Below are positions 3,791-19,700 of a DNA stretch of 64,000 nt, one piece after another; position 1 is the first letter of the stretch; each line of letters begins with the position of its first letter. Position numbers and translations under genes: made by a program. Source of the DNA: Orbicella franksi (taxonomy: Eukaryota); the NCBI GenBank assembly GCA_964199315.1, contig OZ116701.1, forward strand, positions 32,178,001 through 32,242,000, read 5' to 3'. The notes beneath the pieces are model-generated. The model worked only from the letters and a program-made list of their open reading frames with translations. It ran no database searches and was not told the origin of the DNA.

Positions 3791-4018
3791 CTAATGCTGC
3801 GAAATGTTAGGTAAGTTCAAATGAATATCTCCCATCTTGCTTCTTTGAGGTGAAAAATATTAAGTTTCACAATGTAACGATGCTGTAGGGGTTCGTTACA
3901 CCAAGCCATTTCGTGCAAGAACTTAGAATCACAGTAATATTGTTTTTTTTTTTTAATCTGGAAGAACAGGCAATCTTTCCAGATTGATAGTTCGTTCTTT
4001 AGAGAGTTGTCGCTGCTT

Positions 4019-7000
4019 TCATTCCCTTGCATCTATCTTTCTTCGTGAATACTTGACTTTTAGGAGGTCGCCCACTTCGTCGATTGCTTCCAGAGCCTGT
4101 TGAATGATTACAACACCAAAGTCAATACCTTGCACAGCAATTGCAATAGATAGTCGCGAGTTGGTGGGGTGCGTGTGTGGGAGGAAACGCGTGTGGTGTG
4201 GAAATACGCGCGTGTCTCTCTCGCGTGCGCTTCCCGCCAACTCCCATCATTGCCCCCGCAGGGTTTTGGCCCAGACGGTCAAAACCCGAGGAGGCACCCT
4301 AGAGGTCCCCACGTAGAGGGAGAAAAGTTTCGCCGTAGCAGAAAAATTATCGATTTTTGAGAACACGGCTCGCAAAGGATTACCCAAAAGTACGCAAAGG
4401 ATTGCCGAAAGTTTGCTGGGGGTCGAATAAACACACCGCGATCAAGTAAATTCTCTTCGAAATGGCGGAGATTCTGGTATAGAATAAATTGAAAACGATT
4501 TCAAAGATCCTGAAGATGGATTTTGGGATAAAAACAACTCAAAAGGTATCGTAAGTAATACTGAAGTACCGGTAAATCTCGATATTCGAGGCGAATGTCG
4601 CTTCGCTCGTGTTCAATTGTGACTACAATACTTCCGATCGCCAATTCTACCTTTGGCATGTCGTTTATTCAGATCACTCATTTGTGCTGAGTTAACTTAC
4701 GTGGCGTAGAGATCATGTCACGGCTGGGTGACTTAGCAGGAATCCAAAGGTAAATGTAAATGTTTTGCAACGTTTTCGTTGAGCACAAAGAACTTGACTC
4801 TAATTTGCAATTATCGATTAGAGCAGCGACAGTACGCGATACTCCTGTTAATAACCTGAGTATCAGGCCTTTCTTAGCAAGAGGGTAGGGGAAGGGGGAA
4901 ATTGCAGAGAAAGGCCTTTTCTTTACCGGGTGCTTTCTCCTCCTACCCGTCTCAGAAAAAAATCGTGACAGCAAGTTCCAGATGATTTTCTCAACTGCTG
5001 TTCTGCTTTCGAGATACTTTTGCTCTTATAGTAAGAAAAAATGGTTTGTTTCATCATCAAATTCAAACAGCAGAGTGGTTTGACATAATATTTTGTTGCT
5101 CTATAATTTTGTAACCATTTTTTTCTTAAGTTCTACTGAGTGAAATTTTTTTGAAACAGAAATATTACTTCCCATGAAGGAAACATTTTTTTTTTCAGAA
5201 AGTACTTTTTGTTTCCCTTCAAACGAAAACTCACGGCTGTCTGGAATGGAATGAGTTAAATAGAAAGTGTTGGTTTAGTTTACTTAGTTGAATGTTTGGA
5301 TATTAACCACGATAAGATGTCTAAGTTATAGGAACATTATGAGTGATAAAGTTTACAAAAAAAAAAGATATAGAAGTTTTAGTTCATACAATAATGTTCA
5401 ATTGTTTTCCGTCAGTAGAAATAAAAGAAAGCGGGGGCAGCTTTAGTGATAACTATTACTGGTGTATACAAAGTGAACAGGGTGCTACGGAATCGAACAG
5501 CAATACTACAGGACTAGTCCGAAAAGCCTGATTGGCCGCAAAAGCATGAAAAGGCGGGAAATTTCGTGTAACTGCAGCCTCGACTTAAGCCTGACACCTG
5601 ACTGGTCAACAACACGATCATGCTGTGAGCTGATTGGTGGTGGCCCAAGTCAGTTTCCCAAAAGCATTGCGACAGTGCAATCCAGAGTTCTTGTGATTCA
5701 TCTCACCTTATCCAGCATTTCCCTGGTGTGTGAAGCTGAAAGACAAATTCTTGCTCTCGCCTCAATCAGTGAAGTGGCCGGAAACCCCGCGATGACTACA
5801 GCTACGTTTCTTTTCAACATTTCACGAGAAAAGGCTCTGCAACAAAATATTGAACACTTGTGAGTGATCAAGTTTGGTTATGTAAAGAATTCCTCAGACG
5901 ATAAAGCATTTTAGTTACTTCAAGTATTATAAGCCACATTCTTCCTCTGCTTGAAAGGCGTCGGAGTCTGGACCCTAAAAATGCCATACTGATGACGTCA
6001 TTATAGAAGTCCGTGTAGCGTGTCTGATTGGTTATTACTCTTTTTTTAAATTTTCACGCGCTTTTAATAACCAATCATATCTCTGTAGAGTCACAACTCT
6101 ATTTGCATACATCTTTGGTAATAAAACTGACTTACACAGTTTTTGCCGGCATGTAGAGAAGAATTGGTACCACTGCCGAAGCATCATGACCGTACACAAT
6201 AAATCCCATCTTTTTAAGCCTTTGTCTGAAGTACCTGTAATGTACAGAAAACAGCGCGTTACCTCAAAAGTTGTACCGTAGTTAGGATCACTGTTGCAAA
6301 GTTTTGTGAGAAGGAAACAGATATTTTCCCATGTAACCGCACCTCACGTTCAGGTTTGATGCAAACTCGCCCGAGGCAACGTACAATAGTTTAAGAAGGA
6401 ATTCACCAGAAGTTCGAGTAACAAGTGGACGAAAACTTTGTACTGAAATGATTTACATCATATTGCAAACTTCTGTGAGACTGTTTGTGAAATGAAACTG
6501 ATGATGAAATTTTACCTGTGTTTGCACAATTTCCCAGAACTTTGAAATTTTATTTTCTCGAGTTCCCATGGGAGATTGTTTTCGGTGTTATTTCAGGCAA
6601 CTGTTTATATCTGTAGCTTTAGGAAACTTTAAAATACGTAACATTATTCTGGTGCAAGGTTTTTGTCGACTAAAAACTGAAATTGCTCGAATTCCAATCG
6701 GAATTCGTCTTAATGCTTTAAGTTAGTACATAGAACTCTGAACTAAATTAAATCATTATAGTTTTATAATTACACTTACTTGCAATTCCGTGCTAAAGTG
6801 CACAGCCTCTGCTTTCCTAAAAAAAATTAAAAAGACAATTTCAGACACGATCCTGTTGCTGTAGCTTTGAAAAACCCACTGGTTCCAGTGGAATATTTTC
6901 TACGGTCAAACAAAGTACCAACCAGTGACCAACAGCATGACAAAATAATAAATGAAATTACAGGAGAGATTACACAATGTAATGGAGTCTTCATCACACC

Positions 7001-10000
7001 GTGAAGTTTCGTATGTAACGACCCTCGTTAATTTTGGAATTAGCCGCCTTTGGGGCTGGCTACTTTCGGGAGGGTCGTTACTTTAGGAAGTTTACGGTAT
7101 TGGCACCCTAATTCTTCGTTCTAATCGACCTGTTAGCGTAAAGCGAGCAGCAATGGAAACCATTCTCGTCCCCTGAGGGCGCGATCCTTTTGGTTAGCAC
7201 TAAGAATGCGAATCTCTAGCCAGTCCTCGACCAGTCTCCAGTTTCTGAGCATGCCCAGAGTGCTCAGTTTTATTTGTCAGCCAAACAGACTGCGTCGGAA
7301 GTCCGTGGATCGTGGATTTTCCACCTGGACTTGGCCAGAGGTGGACAGAGGTCCAATTTAACGACAAGGATCGCGGCCACTGATACGAGGAATGTTGTGG
7401 AAATTACCGACTAACTGGGCATGCGTGTTACTGTAACCTTTTCACAACTGTCGCTTACCAGTAAGAATGAAGACTTCAGGAGAAAAAGAAGGCCAAAAGA
7501 AAAGCGAAATGTAGGCTCCGAAGATGCGTGGAGTATGAATTTAACCAACCTTTGTTTGTGCCGTCTTCGCCCATGATTATTTTCATGGATGACAATATTT
7601 GCATGACCACTGGGGGTGACATGAAGGAGGCGTACGCGGCACTGTGCGAAGTACCTCGGATATGGTTTATTATTTCCTGTAAAAATGAAATACCGACTGT
7701 TACACGCTGATCATCTCATATTCAACAAGCGCGAGTGGAATAATTGTTTCATCAGTTAAACTGTTCAGGTACAGTGATGGCTAAATCAATGAAACCTCTT
7801 GAACTGTATTATCCAATGATCCAGTTTTAAATAATGTTTCTTATCAAATCCTAGAGTGTGAATGACCTTTCAAATGAAAGCTATGGAGCATTATTAACCA
7901 ACTGCAGCGAATACCGTCCAAATAACAGTACAAATATACAGCGATATTTTACAGTAGAAAACCTGTTTGCCATATTTGTACAGTAGAGAACCTGTTTGCC
8001 ATATTTGTACAGTAGAGAACCTGTTTGACGTACAGGTCGGCGCGCGCACGCAAAACTGTTACACTCTCCCTCTTTCATTGATAAATTTATTTACTACAGC
8101 AGTTGGATAATAAATCCCTTATTAGATATTTTGGTGTGTAGTATCGATCGCTGTATATTTTTACTCGTTGTTTGTATTTTGACTCGCCCTACGGGCTCGT
8201 CAAAATACGGCACAACTCGTCAAAATATTCAGCGATACTACACACCAGAACATCTAATAAGATATATGCACCTCCATGTGGCACCGCTTGTTGTCCTTTA
8301 TTGAACACAACTTCAATCAATACAAAAGAAGCTCGGCTCCCTCTAACCTCTGACGCAGCGATGTATCCCCCTGCTGCTCCAAAGCTCTTGGTAAATGTCC
8401 CCATCATGATGTCGATATCAGCTGGGTCCACACCAAAGTAGTCTGTAACGCCCCTTCCGTTGGGACCCATGGCACCAATACTGTGGGCCTCATCTAGGTA
8501 TATGTATGCTTTGTACTTCTTTTTAAGGGCCACAATCTCTGGGAGCTTCGCTAAAGAGCCCTCCATACTGAAAAAAAGAAATAAAATGTACCAAGTTGTC
8601 GCGTTCACAGACGACCTTGAAATCGTTTTAATTTAGCCCAAATCACGCATGTATTGACTCGGACAACGCCTCAGTAAATTATTTTGACGGAATCCGTTAT
8701 TTCAGCGTTCATTCGTGGTATGTTCAAGTCGTGGTAACCATGTAGTGTTCTTAAAAATGACTTATTCAAGCCCCGGTGTATGATCCGTAGGAAGAGTCCT
8801 TAGACGGTGAGATTTGTTCGGTCTTAAGATCACTAAATACCGAGTAGTTTCTGGGTACTTTGTAAGTCTGAAACATTGTTACATCGGGAAATTCGTCGTG
8901 TCACGGGGCTTTTTCGTTATCTCGGGAGGAGCTCGCCCGCGCAGCGTCACTCACTCACCTATAAACACCTTCAACAATAATGAGGATCTTCTTCCACGCT
9001 CTGTGTGTCCTCGGCTGTCCCTGCACAACGGATTCTCGTAGTATGTTCTCCAAACTCTTCATATCTAGAATGTTATGATAAATATTTAGACTCTATTTAC
9101 GATACAGATGTGTAGTGTAGGCAACTTACATGAGAGTATGCTGAAAGGAAGGAAGGTCTGGAGATAAATGCTAACTCTAAGGCGCTCTTGTGCGCTTTTG
9201 TCAAGCTCAACTTTTGATGACAGTCAACGTCAGCTGTCGATCGTTTGACTTGCAGAACGTCAACTTAGTCTTGCATCCTTTTCAAGTATCTCGCTTCTCC
9301 TTTTCTTGAATCTCGGTTATTCCCAGCTCCCGGTCTTACGAGACTGTAGAGTCCCGCTTACTTGATTTGTTTGTTTGTTTTTGGAAGTAGGACTGGTCGG
9401 TGTCGGTCTTTAAGTCGGTCGTTAAGTCTCCTTGAATAAGGAAAAATAATAACACGGAAAATCCCCGTCACCTACTTCCCAGACCCCTCGTGCTTGCGCT
9501 GCGAGCCTTACCATTGTGTTTGAATACTTTAATCTTTGCTCCTGACAACCTTGCTCCCAACACCAGTGATGTGTGGTTGAGTTCGTCGCTAATAATCAAG
9601 TCTCCCTTGCCCACCAGAGTGGGGATATTTGCAGAGTTGGTGGCGAATCCCATACCAAACACCATAGCAGCAGGTTTACCAACAAACCTAGCGACAAGGG
9701 CTTCTAGTTCGTCGTGAATGGCAAGGGTACCTGGAACGAGAAAAGAGGAAATGTTATCAATACGACAGAATTATCGCAGGTGTTTCCATTTAGTACTGAG
9801 TCGACTGGGATGTCCATATTTACATAATAGGCACACTGCGGTGACAAACGTGACAAAACGACGTCTGTCGAAGAGCTATGATTTTAATCTTGACTTTTCA
9901 TATGCTACAACATACATCTTCAGAAATGGCCGTTAAGTTAAATTACAAATACTGACTATATAATATGTAACCTGAAAGACTGGTAGCTTAGGACCATGAA

Positions 10001-12347
10001 AGGAACATGAAATAATCAATTCCTGAGCTAGTTTTTTTTTCTGAGCTGTACAGTCCTCCGCAGGAGAAAAGATTGCGACTGGTAGATTTACCCATATTTC
10101 TTAGCGCACGAAAACTTTAACAAACGTACAGGAATGTTCTAAAATCTTCCGTAAACCCAGCACACACAATGTAGTTGGCACAAGGGACAAATATTGCAAA
10201 AATATGGCCTTCTTCAGTCTTCGAACTTTATGGGCTGTGTAATATTCGCATGCTCGAGCAATATCCACTGTTGAGGCTAAGAAAGAATTAGAAAAACGAT
10301 ATTCCTTCGACACACTCTAAAACATGTAAAAAGTTTTAAAAACTGTTGAAAAACCTGTAACATTGGCACTACAAAATATACTCCGCTAAAACACTAGCCT
10401 CATCAGTTGCACACCATATTGGATTTCGTAAATTTGTTACGATAAACAAAGTAGCAGATAATTCCTTTCACAGAATAGACGTTTGAAACCACTAACGGGC
10501 CAAATTCATTTGAGTTCAGCACGTCAGTGGCACGACGTTTGGACTAGGCCTTAAAAATTTATTGATAGCATTAAGTCTAGAAATCGCAGAAAACTTTAAT
10601 TGATTACTCAGATTCCAGCGACCCTATCCAGACCCTGTATATCTGGGGTCACTCACCATATTCGTGTCTCGAGCTGCACCCTGCGATGCCGTACTCACGG
10701 ACCGCCTGTTCAGCGGATTCTGCGCATGGTCCAGAATTCTCAGCGAACCCAAGGTAGTTGTACGAAGCAAGATTCACAGTCTTTGTAGTCGTTCCTGGAT
10801 AGCTGCAAAAATGTTTTATTAAAAAAGTACCGTCGGTATTGATCTTTTGTTTACCCAAAATAAGATAGAGAACAGAAGGGAGGCCAGTAATTTATAGGCA
10901 ATATTAAAGAAAAAGAAAGGGCGCTTTGGAAATAAACGAGTTCGTAACTGGGAAAAAGCAGTTTTATCCAGTTTGCAAGAGATTGGATAAAGGGCAACTG
11001 GTAATTAGCAAACTTGGCCATGGCGACTACGAGCAGGGTGCTATTTTCCTCCCATAGTGAAGGGCTGTGACAGCCTAATAAGTGAGTGCATGGTCATGGA
11101 CCCGGAAAAGGGATTTAGCCTTCCCCCCCCCCCCCCCCACCTCCGTCTCAACACCTCATGACACTTTGTTCGCAGCTATTCAAAGGATTTGGAGACTGGC
11201 ATTTCCTTGTCTTAAATTGGATCTAATATCTAACACGTAAGTCCTTTTAATCACCGAGGAAAGCCTCAAAACGAATAGTTTTCTAAGATAGAAAAAACTA
11301 AAGAAAAAATACAAAACCACAAATAAACAAGGATAATTTATAATTGAGGAAGATTGAGACAGCTAACGAACGGACAAGCTTGAAAAACAAATAGCCTTCC
11401 ACTGCCCCCAAGTCCTATCAAGTTTGAATCGGCCATGGCGAGGACGTTTCCTTATACTCGAACCCAAGCTCCGGGAGAAATTCGCAACGCATACCTGAAG
11501 GTCCAGTTCCAGTCATGTGATTGCCTGTCCACTAGATCGATCTCTCCACCAGGTACGCTACAGATGGGTCTGTTAAAACAGTCTCTTACACGAGTGTAAA
11601 GATTTCTCGTGTAGAAACTTTCAAAGTCAGAGTAGAGTGGTACGAAGCCCTGAAATGTCAAAATAAATCCCTCCGATTTGAGCAAAAAGTCTTGCTCCAG
11701 GTATTTCAAGCTATAAACAGGTTTGAAGGCCTGTTTACAAGGAGGGAGGGTTACACTAGCAAGCGAGTTAACCCTAGCTGAAGGGCAATAGGTAGCCCGG
11801 GTCTACAGACAAAATTTCACATGTAGGGTAACCCTAGAACCCAAGACAACTTAATGCGCGGTTACACTCAAATGGTTAATCCTACCTGGAGTGTTTACAA
11901 GGGAAAAAGTTAACCCGTTTGCCAGGGTAACCCTTGCACGCAGATAGGGCAACCCGCCTACTCGGGTAACCCTAGCTGTTTTGTAAACACGACAAAGAAA
12001 AAAAGGAGGAAATGTGTGAGTGCTTAGAGGTCCTTATCCGAGGAATTTGAGAACGCATCAAATATTTCCATCCCTGACACTACGCCGGAGAAATTTAAAA
12101 ACGCGACAATACGGTCATTTTGGATTTGTGTTTGAGGAAAATTCGGGCAGGGAATATTATGGTTATCGTAACGTCATCGTTTTCGAAAAGCATCGTTTTC
12201 AAAATGTTTTTCGTCCACACAAACGGAAAGCCGGCGTTTTCAATAGAAAATTGTTCTTGCAACTTTTGTCCCAACAAACTGCGTGATCACCTGCAGACCC
12301 GGGGGGGTACTTTGGAAATTTCTGGGTGGGGATGTGCCGCTGGGACC

Positions 12348-12378
<31 letters not shown>

Positions 12379-12566
12379 CAGCTGAATTTGCTACCCTATA
12401 CTAGATTAAACTCCCTAAATCCCCCCATCTATCGACACTGTTGAGGCTGATTTGCATAAATGTAAACTTGCCGATTTGATTTTTTTATATTTTTGAGTGG
12501 CAATTCCTGGTTCCTTAGCCTAGATAAAATCTTCAACCAACTAGTCAGTTTTGTGAAAAGTTATAC

Positions 12567-12605
<39 letters not shown>

Positions 12606-13876
12606 CCTAGAGTAAACTTCTTGGAAACCATACCCTTCACAGCGGCACATACCTATATAGCCCATATATGGCTGTGCCCCCCCCCCCCGCCCCCCGCCGG
12701 GGCTGCAGGCAGGAAAAATTGCCTCTAGCGACAAAAGAAGTTTTTGGCTCAATGTTGACCCATTTTGAGCACTATATATCAAAACAAGAAAGCTGAAGAA
12801 ATCATAATACCGTGTAAAAGGGTGGAAAAACGAGGAAATTTTGACGATCTGTTTAAAAATTAGTAGACATTAAAATTTCAAAAACAGTTGATCAAGTGAG
12901 TCCGAGTGTTCAGCTGAAGTTCTAAATTGAAATTTAAAATTAAAATTCTAAAATTCTAAAACGTATTCTGTATTAATTATGCACAAGGTTCGCCTAAACA
13001 CGTGCACGGCTAACAAAGATCAGCTGATTACGAAGATCACGCCACCAAAGAAAGCATTTACGCATGCGTTTAGTAGGAAAAGGTCCATAGTTCAGAAAGG
13101 TGGAATAATTTTTGCATAGAAATTTCGAAATTGCATGAATAGCTTGTGTCACAACAGAGATATAATCAATATTTTTACGACAGTTTAACTTTTCACGCAA
13201 AAAAACTAATTCGAGCTAATTCGGTGGACTCCTTTGAAAACAGCCATGAAGATCTTTTTGGCAAGACTGTCTTCGAAGCCCGCCAAAAAAATTCTTCACA
13301 TGATCAAGAAAAATTATCTTCGATCGCTTTGATAACGAAACATGCAAGCATGCTAGAATGCAATATTTTCCTCAAATGTAGAGGGAAAGTCAGCTTTAGC
13401 GGTAAGCTTATATAGTTTTCCGGCTCTTTGTTTTTTCTCTTTGTTTCCTGCACCGAAAACCGGTTGAGTTTAGAGTTTCAGCTTATTGTTTACGCAATCG
13501 AGGGTAGCGTCATTGTGTAGCCGTGTCAAGACGATTTCACTCACTGTTTTGGCTATGAAGATCCAACCACTTACACTCTGAATCTTAGTGCAACCTACCG
13601 TGGAAGTTATTTTCCTACCTTATTGCCTGTTTCTTTGACTGCCTTGGATTTTTCTAAGCCATATTTACGCATGAAGTCACGCATATAGCCGAAAATTATC
13701 AGAAAGAAGTAAGACATGTAGGTCATCACGGCGCAATAAAGAGGTGTCTCCTCAAACTCATCCAGCATTTCAGCAGCGTAGTTTTTCTCTTGGCTCGTGA
13801 ACCCGTTTGATCCCTTGTGGAAGCCATTTTTTCTGGAATGCTGACTTCTTCTCGTCGCGTACGAGCCAGCCACCAT
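4019..13876 (-). CDS. SPTLC2: Serine palmitoyltransferase LCB2 subunit, paralog A (divergent), 11 exons, 524 aa
   Basis: Exons 13619-13876, 11495-11649, 10657-10802, 9512-9730, 8959-9064, 8348-8567, 7550-7676, 6780-6816, 6136-6234, 5707-5836, 4019-4096. All introns are GT-AG and phases are consistent (1575 nt). Motifs: SYNYLGF, SDELNH, DEAHS, PLP-lysine GTFTKSFG, C-terminal [16 protein letters not shown]. Confidence 0.95.
7952..8027. repeat. 29-bp tandem minisatellite (~2.6 units)
   Basis: Unit cagtagagaacctgtttgccatatttgta at 7952, 7981 and partially at 8010. Confidence 0.9.
12297..12697. mobile_element. MITE starting cccggggggtact; related copy ~37939-38380
   Basis: cccggggggtact...tgtgccgctggga...ataccctat(c/t)c(t/c)agac motifs are shared with 37939-38380. 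Confidence 0.65.
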
Positions 13877-14869
13877 ATTTGCTTGGCGAAAAGAAATCTA
13901 CACGCTCGTGCGTGACGAATACAACCCGGCGAAAGGGGGGGGGGGGGGGGGGAGGAGGGGGGAACTCTGCAATACAAATGAGGGGCTGATTGTCCGACAT
14001 TTGGAAAAGAAACCCTAAATGGTCTAGAATCGCGATTTGTGACTGTGACTAAATTCATTTTCACCCCTGAGAGATGCCAATTTCAAACAGCAAATTAACT
14101 GTGACTGACAATCTCTTTTTGCTCAATATCCCTCCTAAAAGTGCTGCGGCGGCCATTTCATATTTTACTCAGTTTCATTTCTGTAAGTAGTTCCACCCCC
14201 CCTCCCCCGGGTGGGGAGGGAAAGCATGCCCGGCCCTCAGTCAACAATCTAAACACGACAAGTGTCAAGAACTTCATTCACTACTCTCCATTCAGCATCG
14301 AGTTCATTGTCAGCATGTTTTGTTTTGTAAGTCAGCACCTGTTGTAGACTTGTCATGTTTAAGCTGTGTCGTAATCAAGTCAGTTTCGTGGAGCAACGTC
14401 AGAATATTTTAGATATAGCGTGGTGAATGTTTAAAAGAACAGCAAATTTACTAGTAAATACACTTAAACTCTGTCTGGTGTTGTCTGCTGTTCAGTATTA
14501 TTCAGGCAAATGTTTCGTTCGATTTTAGGCGCAAATTTTAGCCCTCAAAGCTTGTGTAATGCGTCAAGCAAATCGGATTTATTTCTTGAAACTAAACAAC
14601 GATTATGTTTTTCTTAGGAGGTCTCCTATTATATTGCGCAACAGTACGAGCTGGAGGAGTTGCGTGACTCTGTTCAATGCGTACCTTGTCAAGCACGCGA
14701 CCGATCTGCGGGTCACGCGAAGTAAGCACGGACGAAGTTAACCCTGTTATAGTTACAGACCGATGTCATTGCTACAAACAGGCACAAAAGCAGTTGTTGA
14801 GACACTGTTCGAAAACAAACTTTCAGCCTTCAAGTGTAATTTGTCCTACCTACACTGTCATATTTCGCT

Positions 14870-15180: not shown

Positions 15181-16706
15181 TTTATTATTTTTGTTCATTT
15201 CCCGGTCATTTGTTTTAGGTTCAGCTCACGTGAAGTTCGACTTACAACGCAGCCATACGTGTAGAACAAGTCAACGATTTCCACAAGTATTTAATTACAC
15301 TGGTTTTAGGTTGTTTCATATCAGTCTGTGATCAGGCACTACTCTATGCTTGTTATTACCTAACATAAAAAACATTGTACCTTCTTCAAGTTATTTTATT
15401 GGTTTATCGGCACAGAACAAGTGCCTCTTTTTACTGAGCCCGCGCGTTCCAGCAGCGTTGTGTTGTCGCCTAGCAACATGACGTCTGATGACATTTCTTT
15501 CCGAGTTCTTTCCGAACGGTAGAGGAATCGTAAACTTTATTTCTGCTGCTTTCACGAGGACTTCAGTGCTAAAGCTGGCATTAGTTCCTCACCAGTATGC
15601 ATATTTAAATTACATCCTAGACTCGGAACGAAAGCAAAACTCGCAATTCGCGAGAGACACCCACGCAAATGACGAAACTTTGCCACTCGCGCGCGTGTTT
15701 TAACCCCACCGAGCCACGTTGAACAAGTATTATTACAGATCCTCTGTCAAGACCACTCAACTCAAGAATATCCTAGAAAATTTTAGCGCGCAAATGGTTA
15801 GTATGAAATGCGCACTTTGAGTTAAGGCTATTATTTTCACCTAAGTTCTTACCATTCTTTCTCACAGAATCGCTAAACATACAATCCTGCGGCAGTGTTA
15901 AATATTTAAAGTATATGATATATGATCCTACATGCTGTAGCGTTAAATAAGTAACTCCAAAAACTGCACTGCTTAAAGTAGGGTAAACATATAAAATGTT
16001 GTATATGAAAAGTTATGTTCGTTTTAAAAAACAGAAAAGGTACCCAAAAGTAGCGCCCCTATAAAGAAAATGTGCATCTTTTTCACAATGATGAATTTAC
16101 ACAATATTTGTTATACAATTCTTACCATATAATATTTTTCTTCAAATTGCTTGCTACTGATTTAGTGAAAACTTAAAACAAGACATATTTCTTTTTCGGT
16201 ATACTCGGAAAATTATGTCTCTGAACAGTTGCCCACCACTCTGATTACACTGAGAGAAGAGGGAGTACCCGGACCAAGTTATGTAATCTTGACGTAAGTC
16301 ACCAGTCCAAAAAAATTCGAGCCAATGAGCACTAGATAGCTTTCGGCACTAGAATTTCCGAGATTATCTTTTTAACAATACCTTGTTGCCATTGGAACCA
16401 TTGACCAATGATAGCTCACATTGACCGTCTAGGCTTCATAGTGCCGAAAGCTAATACTCTGTACATACCTGAGGACTGGGTCGGATACGTATCTACAGAG
16501 AACCAACAATTAAATATAATATATTTTAAAATCCACAGCGAGTTTTTTTGGCCTCCTTGCATATTAATTCTAGGCGCATTCCAGGAAAGAAGCAGAGCTT
16601 CTAGTCACACTGGTAATATCAATGGATCAAAGTATTTGCACACTAATTCAATTACATTTGATGTCTATGGTACAGGACAAACTTCTTCCTGATGGAGAAA
16701 ATTCAG

Positions 16707-19700
16707 TTATTTTTTGTGTTTCTGTTTCGAGTACTTGAGTTGCAGAATGTCGCCCACTTCATCGATAGCCTCCAAAGCCTGAAAAGTAATTAAATAAAAG
16801 TTACTTTTCGTGACGACATCTCACTGTTTCATCTTTGAACGATTTATGACCAATTAATGGTAAAAATCAGACACATTACAAAATTCGCCCCTATTGAACT
16901 AGGGCCACAAGAGAACGTCAAGCTCGCCTGGTTCGAGATGCTTCGTTCATGTTTTGCGCCACTCAGCATGTTATCTCTAACGTTTTCACAACCACGACAA
17001 GAAAAATCGTATGGTTTTCTCAAAATTCGAACATCAAACAGGTTTGGGCCACCTAAAACTGCTCTGCTAGTGACTTTACAGAGTTCTGAAATTCTTTTAG
17101 CACTGCTTCACTGCTAGGTTATTTTCCACTGACCTTGTCCAACATTTCCCGCGTGTGAGCAGCTGACAAGCAGAACCTGGTGCGAGATTCGATCAGAGGA
17201 GTGGCAGGGAACCCAACCACAACAACAGCGACGTTCCTCTTTAACATTTCACGGCCAAACGCTCTAAAGAAAGAGAACAACGGCTTTTGAATTTATAATT
17301 AAAAAAACGTACAAAGAAGTTAGCCGACCTATCTACCATCTCAAAATGAAGAGAGTAGAACCAAAGCCTAACAGGGAGTAAAGTTTAGGGCACAGGTAAC
17401 CCTTGCAGTCTGTCTGACAATAAGCTTAATGCGGGCTGTAGCACCGGTTACCTGAAACCTCATAGGATTTTCAAATGTAGGTTTTGCTCGCAGAAAATAA
17501 TTTCAAGACAAAATTAATTTTGCCATCCACCCATCCACATCATCTTTAAAACAAATGTTTCTGCATTACCAACATCAGCCATCTGTGCTGAAACTTTGCA
17601 ATGACGCTTAAGTTTTCACGCTCTCAATTCTAAACAGACTACTTGCGGTTTCTCAAGAAAAGGTCAGTACAAAACTTATGAGGTTATAGAGAGGGCATGC
17701 GAAACTTGTTCTTGAAGCCTAAAAAACAATGTTAATTTAGGGAGGAGGCCACATCAGCCTTAGCTGATTTTCATGCCGGTCCTGTCCAGGTCGAAGTGGA
17801 ATTTGGAGACGTTGGTTTTTGTAAAGGGAGGAAAACCGGAGAACCCGGAGAAAAACCCTCGGAGCAAGGAGAGAACCAACAACAAAGTCAACCCACATAT
17901 GGCACCGGGCCAGAATCAAACCCAGGCCACATTGGTTGGAAGCGAGCGCTCTCACCACTTCACTATCCCTGCTCCCCATGCTGATTCAAATAAAGGCGTA
18001 CTCACGCAATTTTTGCTGGCATAAAGAGAAGAAGAGGTACAACAGGCGAGGCATCATGACCATAAACAATAAATCCCATTTCTTTGAGCCTTTGCCGGAA
18101 ATACCTAAAGAACAAAAAAAAAAGGGAAAACTTGTACAGATGTAACCTTTTACATGTACCAGCTAGGTAGATCAAGGTAAATTACCAAGTAATGTATACA
18201 CATTACACACAGATTTTTCAGATTTTTCCTTACTTGCAGTTTTCAGCAAGGGCAATCAGTCTTTTCTTCCCTGGAAGAGTTAAAATTAAAATTGTCAATC
18301 ACTTCCTTGTAATGCAAAAACTGGAGGGAAATTGCTCTTAACTTTTGTTTTTGCTGGTAGTATCAGGGGGAGGACAGGGGGTGGCAGATGGACTGTCACT
18401 GGAGAGAAGATGTACATGTATGAACCCGATACAATCAATGCTTTTGGCACAATCAATCTTGAACAACACCATTAACTGTTAACTAACCAACCTTTGTCTG
18501 TGCCGTCTTCACCCATGATCATCTTCATGGATGAGATGATTTGCATCACCACTGGAGGCGACATGGAAGAAGCGTAGGCTGCACTGTGAGAACTTCCTCG
18601 GATGTGACTAATTATTTCCTGTGGAATAAAACAAGTTCATCAGAAAACCCGCATTCACATTGAACTCAATTTAATAATCAACAAATTGACCAAGAAACAA
18701 ATTCCAATCAAGTAACCGATGTACATTGAGCTCACTTCTGTTTACAATTGTTTGTTTGTTTGTTTGTTTGTTTTGGTGGAGGGGGTGATTGAATAACTCT
18801 AAGATATAAATGCCACAAAATAATGTGTTAAATATTACAGCCCAGCTATGTGATGTTGAAATGTACATGTACATGTTCATGTATTAAATGAGTACAAAAA
18901 TTGTGTTCCATGATATTTGTAATGTACATGTAAGAATCAAATTAATTATAAGTTTAATGCTATGCACACAGACTTCATTTCCCTACCCATGACAAGTACT
19001 AAGCACTGAGTTCAATCTCTACCTTTCAGAGTCATAACAAATCAACTAATAACCATTTTGGTCTGTAGGGCCACCTTACAATCTTTACCTCTGCCATTGT
19101 TTTGTACTAATATTCATCACTCTCCAGACCACAGTGGATCATACATGTACATGTGCATGTTTGTACAGGAAATGTCATTATTATCAAGCTGACCTTAGTT
19201 GCAGCAATGTATCCCCCTGCTGCTCCAAAGCTCTTGGTAAATGTGCCCATCATGATGTCGATATCAGCTGGGTCCACACCAAAGTAGTCTGTAACGCCCC
19301 TTCCATTGGGACCCATGGCACCAATACTGTGGGCCTCATCAAGAAAAATGTATGCTTTGTACTTCTTTTTAAGGGCGACAACCTCTGGCAGCCTCACTAT
19401 CGAGCCTTCCATACTAGAAATTAAACATGACAGTTTAAAGTATTTTTTATGTCGATGATTGGGTTGAAAAACTGTTTACAGGATATGTCCAGTGCTGTAT
19501 AATTTATTGAAATTCTGTTTATACTACATTTAAAACAGTTAATTAAAATTAAAACTAGAAAAAAAAAACTTGCATACTACTACATTGTAACCCTCCGAGG
19601 AAGCCATGGGCTAAAACAAATCTCAGGTTTATCACTTCAGACTTTAAATTTAATTGTAGAAGGGCAGGCTTTGAGTGTTTGTAATAGAGAATACTTATTA

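Follow-up and report, generated by a model that had tools for sequence, protein, structure and literature searches.

Genes at the locus

A window of 64,000 nucleotides from the stony coral Orbicella franksi (assembly GCA_964199315.1, contig OZ116701.1, positions 32,178,001 to 32,242,000) contains two complete tandem genes for LCB2/SPTLC2-type subunits of serine palmitoyltransferase (SPT). SPT determines the rate of sphingolipid synthesis and the backbone chemistry of every sphingolipid, and vertebrates form a wider variety of sphingoid bases by means of the subunit SPTLC3. The two genes, paralog A and its sister paralog B, are both encoded on the minus strand. Positions below are counted from the first base of the window. 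The gene models were built from the sequence, using the homology between the two regions and inspection of the splice sites. An earlier note, made from the same sequence, had recognized two paralogs. Both are real, but the genome holds three, the third copy (C) lying beyond the start of the window.

Paralog A has a coding sequence of 1575 nucleotides without internal stop codons, and all of its introns are of the GT-AG type. The positions and phases of the introns are identical in A and B, and only exons 1 and 11 are of unequal length. The description of A as an intact gene of 11 exons that retains the lysine binding pyridoxal phosphate (PLP) agrees with the gene model and with the codon positions. 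The features are as follows.

4019-13876, minus strand: paralog A, complete LCB2/SPTLC2-type gene, 11 exons, 524 amino acids
16707-23749, minus strand: paralog B, tandem sister, 11 exons, 527 amino acids, conventional motifs
13619-13876, minus strand: exon 1 of A; start codon ATG at 13876-13874; encodes the N-terminal tail with the membrane helix; collinear with L001, a full-length mRNA of the ortholog
11495-11649, minus strand: exon 2 of A; segment FYTRNLY...RDCFNRP; I130V and W134F (human numbering)
10657-10802, minus strand: exon 3 of A; active-site motif; G174A; RNA contig ends at 9731 run into this exon
9512-9730, minus strand: exon 4 of A; SDELNH histidine motif; RNA joint to exon 5
8959-9064, minus strand: exon 5 of A; P306A; RNA joints on both sides
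8348-8567, minus strand: exon 6 of A; DEAHS and GTFTKSFG; PLP lysine codon at 8387-8389; RNA joints
7550-7676, minus strand: exon 7 of A; YASFM; RNA joints on both sides
6780-6816, minus strand: exon 8 of A; micro-exon of 37 nucleotides; RNA joints
6136-6234, minus strand: exon 9 of A; DASAVVP...AKT; P467A and I479T; RNA joints
5707-5836, minus strand: exon 10 of A; PATP-loop exon; V495I, P502S, S506A and F510I; RNA joints
4019-4096, minus strand: exon 11 of A; stop codon at 4019-4021; RNA joint to exon 10
5770-5781, minus strand: PATS codons of A, equivalent to human P499-P502
17197-17208, minus strand: PATP codons of B, located by codon count on the B gene model

The remaining motif differences listed in the earlier note are likewise found in the translations of A and B, respectively: VIAGF and VVVGF, EARARIC and ESRTRFC, ASYNYLG and GSYNYLG, DASAVVP and DASPVVP, AKTVAFS and AKIAAFG, and YASFM and YASSM.

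Directly upstream of the A start codon, at about 13900-14000, there is a run of G on the plus strand (C on the coding strand), which would be translated as poly-Gly or poly-Pro in several frames and is a low-complexity tract in the presumed promoter or 5' untranslated region of A. Similar C/G runs occur within introns at about 11090-11140 and 12650-12700.

Family assignment of paralog A

The A-type orthologs P0290 and P0296 carry the class I/II aminotransferase fold (PF00155), and P0296 matches the human SPTLC2 chain over residues 38-519 with an E value of 2.4e-213. The A protein is 96% identical to P0290/L001 (the product of an orthologous mRNA) and 88% identical to P0296. Its N-terminal membrane-associated helix aligns with the corresponding segment of human SPTLC2. 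The SDELNH histidine, the Asp and His of DEAHS and the RxR sequence following the loop (in EARARIC) are all kept, as is GTFTKSFG, encoded at 8378-8401 and containing the PLP lysine. This lysine is lacking in the non-catalytic LCB1 subunit. The conserved PATP sequence of the gating loop is replaced by PATS in A, a variant that is found in other LCB2 proteins and so does not exclude A from the family. Paralog A also has the scleractinian A-type signature A174, A306, T479, I495 and I510; a further residue, A467, occurs in every A-type protein except an isoform from Acropora millepora. Paralog A is predicted to be an active, catalytic LCB2/SPTLC2-type subunit of SPT.

Expression and selective constraint

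Of the words sampled from the 9.9-kb A stretch, 21-30% are present in fourteen RNA runs from at least 10 studies. The B transcript occurs in largely the same runs with different word shares. Splicing was checked by mapping two raw polyA runs and two sets of RNA contigs onto positions 4000-9800. The RNA bore out all eight introns tested (introns 3-10), and for seven of these the raw polyA reads did so too. Seven lie at the predicted borders 4096/5707, 5836/6136, 6234/6780, 6816/7550, 7676/8348, 8567/8959 and 9064/9512, and intron 3 is confirmed by the contig ends at 9731 that extend into exon 3. Paralog A is thus transcribed and spliced, contrary to the possibility of a silent copy that had been raised with the original proposal. 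The number of A reads was 2 in one polyA run and 423 in another having the same species label. No variants were seen at the PATS codons in any RNA run that was mapped.

An origin of the X23 reads from copy C was considered and rejected, because they match A and not C at the distinguishing sites in exon 11; elsewhere they have private variants. At position 5807 (codon 466 of A) all X23 reads, as well as the X8 and X1 contigs, have C for T, which would change Asn466 to Ser. Asn466 (human N490) is a variable site, and the difference looks like a population variant or a departure from the individual used for the assembly. The depth of RNA reads and contigs is very high at 7686-8270 in intron 6 and at 6328-6521 in intron 8, and many reads end loosely there, among other places at 7710 and 7745-7749. 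These peaks resemble transcripts from other genomic copies of a dispersed repeat or transposon fragment and not pre-mRNA of A.

Upon comparing A with L001, a metatranscriptome mRNA, the nonsynonymous divergence (dN) was found to be 0.019 and the synonymous divergence (dS) 0.37, giving a dN/dS of 0.05. For B and its ortholog L002 the ratio is 0.04. Between A and B synonymous sites are saturated (dS >1.8). Paralog A is under strong purifying selection. Its intact frame, transcription, splicing and low dN/dS show that it is a working gene and not a decaying one.

Age and distribution of the duplication

Homologous proteins were collected using first an exon-based profile and then a coral protein as the seed, and were placed in a maximum-likelihood tree, the sampling of which left Corallimorpharia, Zoantharia and Antipatharia outside. 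A-type proteins were found in Pocillopora damicornis, P. verrucosa, Desmophyllum pertusum, Montipora capricornis and Acropora millepora, together with one mRNA, and B-type proteins in Acropora palmata, Porites evermanni and Oculina patagonica, together with two transcripts. Paralog A falls in the A clade and paralog B in the B clade. The two clades each have support of 100/99 and are sisters with support of 99/94. The sister group of this pair is formed by three sea anemones (Actiniaria; 98/93), and the octocorals and medusozoans branch farther out. The vertebrate SPTLC2 and SPTLC3 proteins form a separate clade (100/97), leaving A outside the SPTLC3 orthology group.

Both coral clades include complex as well as robust corals, showing that the duplication is older than the split between these two groups. 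The tree further indicates that it is younger than the separation from Actiniaria and independent of the event that produced vertebrate SPTLC2 and SPTLC3. The independence from vertebrates had been correctly anticipated in the earlier note, but the idea of a narrow lineage event has to be abandoned, since the duplicate is old and Scleractinia-wide.

In Pocillopora damicornis a gene for a 527-residue protein is followed, in the same orientation, by an A-type gene for a 524-residue protein, as in the window. Nematostella, checked at the level of the locus, has a single LCB2 gene with unrelated neighbours. In Porites evermanni (L014) no A-type gene was found within 10 kb downstream of the B gene, a stretch that includes 3652 N. 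In the same Porites sequence two B-type exons, at 15487-16074 and 18303-18862, each occur twice over a few hundred bases, either through local duplication of exons or as an artefact of the assembly.

The distribution of the genes does not support the connection with algal symbiosis that had been suggested for A. An A-type gene is retained in Desmophyllum pertusum, a deep-sea coral that lives without symbionts, and for the symbiotic anemone Exaiptasia the protein searches, which do not cover its entire genome, gave a single LCB2.

Substitutions characteristic of the A clade

A site was counted as conserved if its conservation reached 90% or more across all the other animal LCB2 proteins in the sample. 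At such sites the A clade has ten clade-wide changes (I130V, W134F, G174A, P306A, I324L, P467A, I479T, V495I, S506A/G and F510I in human numbering). The B clade has one, Y342F (binomial p = 0.012 for 10 against 1). The claim that A, and not B, departs from the conserved motifs is borne out, and the changes cluster around the PATP gate. Counted relative to the sea anemones, 14 changes are fixed in the A clade and 10 in the B clade. Eight of the 14 lie between human residues 467 and 515, flanking the PATP loop (p = 2e-5, for a segment that was chosen post hoc).

The changes at 130 and 134 are located in the segment headed by Y122, and G174A adjoins the SYNYLG active-site motif. Human SPTLC2 disease variants near this motif (N177D, A182P and R183W), and I504F, alter the use of amino acids (PMC10196870; PMC3794620). 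At positions 130, 267 and 480, and mostly at 506, the A clade has the same residue state as two fish SPTLC3 sequences, whereas the B clade shares none of these. With only two SPTLC3 sequences to compare, the sharing is no more than a hint of similarity between A and SPTLC3.

The PATP loop and its PATS variant

The PATP loop is the gate of the substrate tunnel and is supported in yeast by Y110, the counterpart of human Y122 (PMC10550967). The equivalent PPATP loop of the bacterial enzyme moves during catalysis (PMC3794620). In human SPTLC2, inhibition by ORMDL3 acts through a ceramide site made up of Y122 and of two residues adjoining the loop, F498 and I503 (PMC10261145).

Among 271 full-length homologs with a recognizable loop, 248 read PATP and 10 read PATS. 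The PATS set is made up of the robust-coral A-types, Xenia, Dendronephthya, two hydrozoan-like sequences, one fish and one protist-like fusion. The acroporid A-types read PAVP, which indicates that PATS arose within the A clade and not at its origin; the hagfish protein reads PATT. The PATS serine, which the earlier note took to be the key change, is thus present in A but is not diagnostic of the A-type, being confined within that type to robust corals. The suspicion that PATS might be common among ordinary LCB2 proteins is confirmed in part, by the apparently ordinary proteins of the two octocorals, the two hydrozoan-like sequences and the fish. A common derivation of PATS in corals and octocorals was considered and rejected, as the octocorals lie outside Hexacorallia in the tree.

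Copy C, gene conversion and other SPT genes

A search of the whole assembly located the third tandem LCB2 gene about 1.2-10.2 kb before the first base of the window.

G000:C4:32167771-32176807 (contig coordinates), minus strand: copy C, third tandem LCB2 gene
8361-8494, minus strand: gene-conversion tract of 134 nucleotides in exon 6 of A, over the PLP-lysine exon; B counterpart at 19207-19340

Copy C is intact, with 524 amino acids, 11 GT-AG exons and the PATS sequence. It is 94% identical to A, at a dS of 0.20. There are 27 amino acid changes private to C and 3 private to A, and those of C include K257N, Y450C and E481G (A-protein positions) in conserved motifs. Copy C, the youngest of the three, is thus evolving faster, under constraint that has been relaxed or has changed, and A is tightly held. 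One RNA contig of low depth, from run X1, agrees at exon 11 with C and not with A.

Within the tract in exon 6, A and B are 98.5% identical, compared with 91% for A and C, 91% for A and L001, and 94% for C and L001. These values show that the A sequence was overwritten by that of B after A and C had separated. The dS between A and B is 0.30 in exon 6, the other exons being saturated.

Searches of this genome yielded a single locus each for ORMDL and for an ssSPT-like protein, both counts being lower bounds, and LCB2 is thus the only subunit seen in several copies. Genome matches on contigs C11 and C10 were rejected as SPT subunits, because their open reading frames look like those of ALAS- and KBL-type enzymes. 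Two of them (G000:C11:26913925-26914744 and 26946754-26947573) are near-identical loci 33 kb apart, with open reading frames resembling 5-aminolevulinate synthase, and stem from a recent segmental duplication or from a duplication in the assembly.

Possible function of paralog A

The observations are best accounted for if A is a working alternative SPT subunit with an altered gate or altered feedback, a member of an A-type clade to which a tandem duplication in stony corals gave rise and which strong purifying selection has since maintained. We give this explanation a probability of roughly 0.6. Paralog A would pair with the coral LCB1 and with the single ssSPT and ORMDL that were detected, forming a second SPT isozyme. 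This isozyme would perform the same chemistry, the condensation of serine and acyl-CoA to 3-ketosphinganine, while its remodelled gate may change either the admission of acyl-CoA or the feedback by ceramide and ORMDL. The PATS serine would then be a late, robust-coral-specific element of the remodelling and not its cause.

Several observations weigh against this explanation. Tajima tests show no significant difference between A and B in the rate of protein evolution (chi-square 0.0-3.4), and the stems of the two clades in the tree are about equally long (0.16 and 0.17), so that the asymmetry between A and B lies in which sites have changed and not in how many. Most of the A-specific changes are chemically mild (I/V, V/I, G/A, P/A, S/A, F/I and W/F), and their spatial clustering was judged from their position in the sequence and from published descriptions. 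The PATS serine is tolerated in apparently ordinary LCB2 proteins of other cnidarians and is a weak marker. LCB1 was not located in this genome, and its pairing with A is therefore assumed.

A change in substrate choice like that of SPTLC3, with A using acyl-CoA of another length or branching, or another amino acid, to make unusual long-chain bases, is possible but improbable. It would fit the position of the A-fixed changes around the loop gating the tunnel and of G174A beside SYNYLG, the sharing of SPTLC3 states by A and not by B, and the effect on amino-acid use of the disease variants N177D, A182P, R183W and I504F (PMC10196870; PMC3794620). Cnidarian phosphonosphingolipids with C18, C19, C20 and C22 bases have also been described; however, the C19-C22 bases were reported from octocorals and hydrocorals, which do not have the A clade (PMC10301201). 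The convergence with SPTLC3 is counted on two sequences, and the A stem of 0.16 is far shorter than the 0.71 of SPTLC3. In mammals it is mostly the small subunit that determines chain length, and only one ssSPT-like locus was found here. Somewhat less likely still is a division of labour in expression, in which A and B have the same biochemistry, serve in different cell types, stages or conditions, and differ by near-neutral changes fixed early in the A clade. The unequal word shares of A and B in the same RNA runs, the 2 and 423 reads of A in two polyA runs of one species label, the conservative nature of the substitutions and the existence of redundant LCB2 pairs in plants speak for such a division. 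Neutral fixation, on the other hand, would hardly have left ten changes at sites at least 90% conserved, retained in both groups of stony corals, nor placed 8 of 14 fixed changes within one segment of 49 residues while B acquired a single change at a conserved site.

The last alternative sees A as a redundant gene in the process of decaying. It could be supported by the departures of A from conserved motifs and by the relaxed state of the youngest copy, C, with its 27 unique changes against 3 in A. For A itself it is refuted by the intact frame, the correct splicing, the dN/dS of 0.05 and the orthologs in five named genera from both groups of stony corals. Of the functional outcomes, a change in ORMDL/ceramide feedback or a change in expression alone fits the data equally as well as the production of unusual long-chain bases that had been proposed in the earlier note.

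In its boldest form, the hypothesis of a working alternative subunit would mean that stony corals evolved an SPTLC3-like isozyme, in which A, by way of its remodelled PATP gate and of G174A beside the active site, accepts another acyl-CoA or amino acid, or escapes feedback by ceramide and ORMDL, and so supplies a distinct pool of sphingoid bases to some biology peculiar to stony corals. This is speculative and we consider it unlikely. As Desmophyllum keeps A while the sea anemones are without it, such biology would more likely concern calcifying tissue or another trait of stony corals than algal symbiosis.

Paralog A is a real, conserved and previously undescribed, yet unsurprising, member of a known enzyme family with a specific pattern of divergence. 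No literature on SPT paralogs of stony corals was found in the library searched, and public annotation labels the coral copies "serine palmitoyltransferase 2-like". The second SPT subunit that stony corals have independently kept is older than the divergence of their two main groups and has its conserved changes centred on the substrate gate and ceramide-sensing region, and A is a concrete candidate for isozyme-specific synthesis or regulation of sphingolipids in coral lipid biology. Two shortcuts are corrected at the same time: PATS by itself is no marker of new function, and the distribution of the gene does not track symbiosis.

Comparison with known LCB2 subunits

Paralog A has its family and architecture in common with human SPTLC2 (6M4N, 7K0I and related structures), including a tyrosine equivalent to Y122. 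It differs from the human protein by P502S in the PATP loop and by the substitutions found throughout the A clade. Its nearest single-copy relatives are the LCB2 proteins of sea anemones and octocorals (Nematostella, Exaiptasia, Actinia, Xenia and Dendronephthya), which are 72-77% identical to it. They fall outside the A and B pair and lack the other A-clade substitutions, although the octocoral proteins read PATS.

Lineage-specific LCB2 duplicates that have been retained, like the coral pair, are also known as LCB2a and LCB2b in Arabidopsis and as SPTLC2a and SPTLC2b in teleosts, the latter pair being seen among the search matches. The Arabidopsis proteins are regarded as functionally redundant. 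In contrast to that pair, the coral A clade shows one-sided change at conserved sites of the gate region.

Vertebrate SPTLC3 is likewise a second LCB2-type subunit that resulted from a lineage-specific duplication with divergence in one copy. It is not orthologous to A, it keeps PATP where A does not, and its stem is about four times longer (0.71 compared with 0.16). An altered product spectrum has been shown by experiment for SPTLC3, whereas one for coral A is hypothetical.

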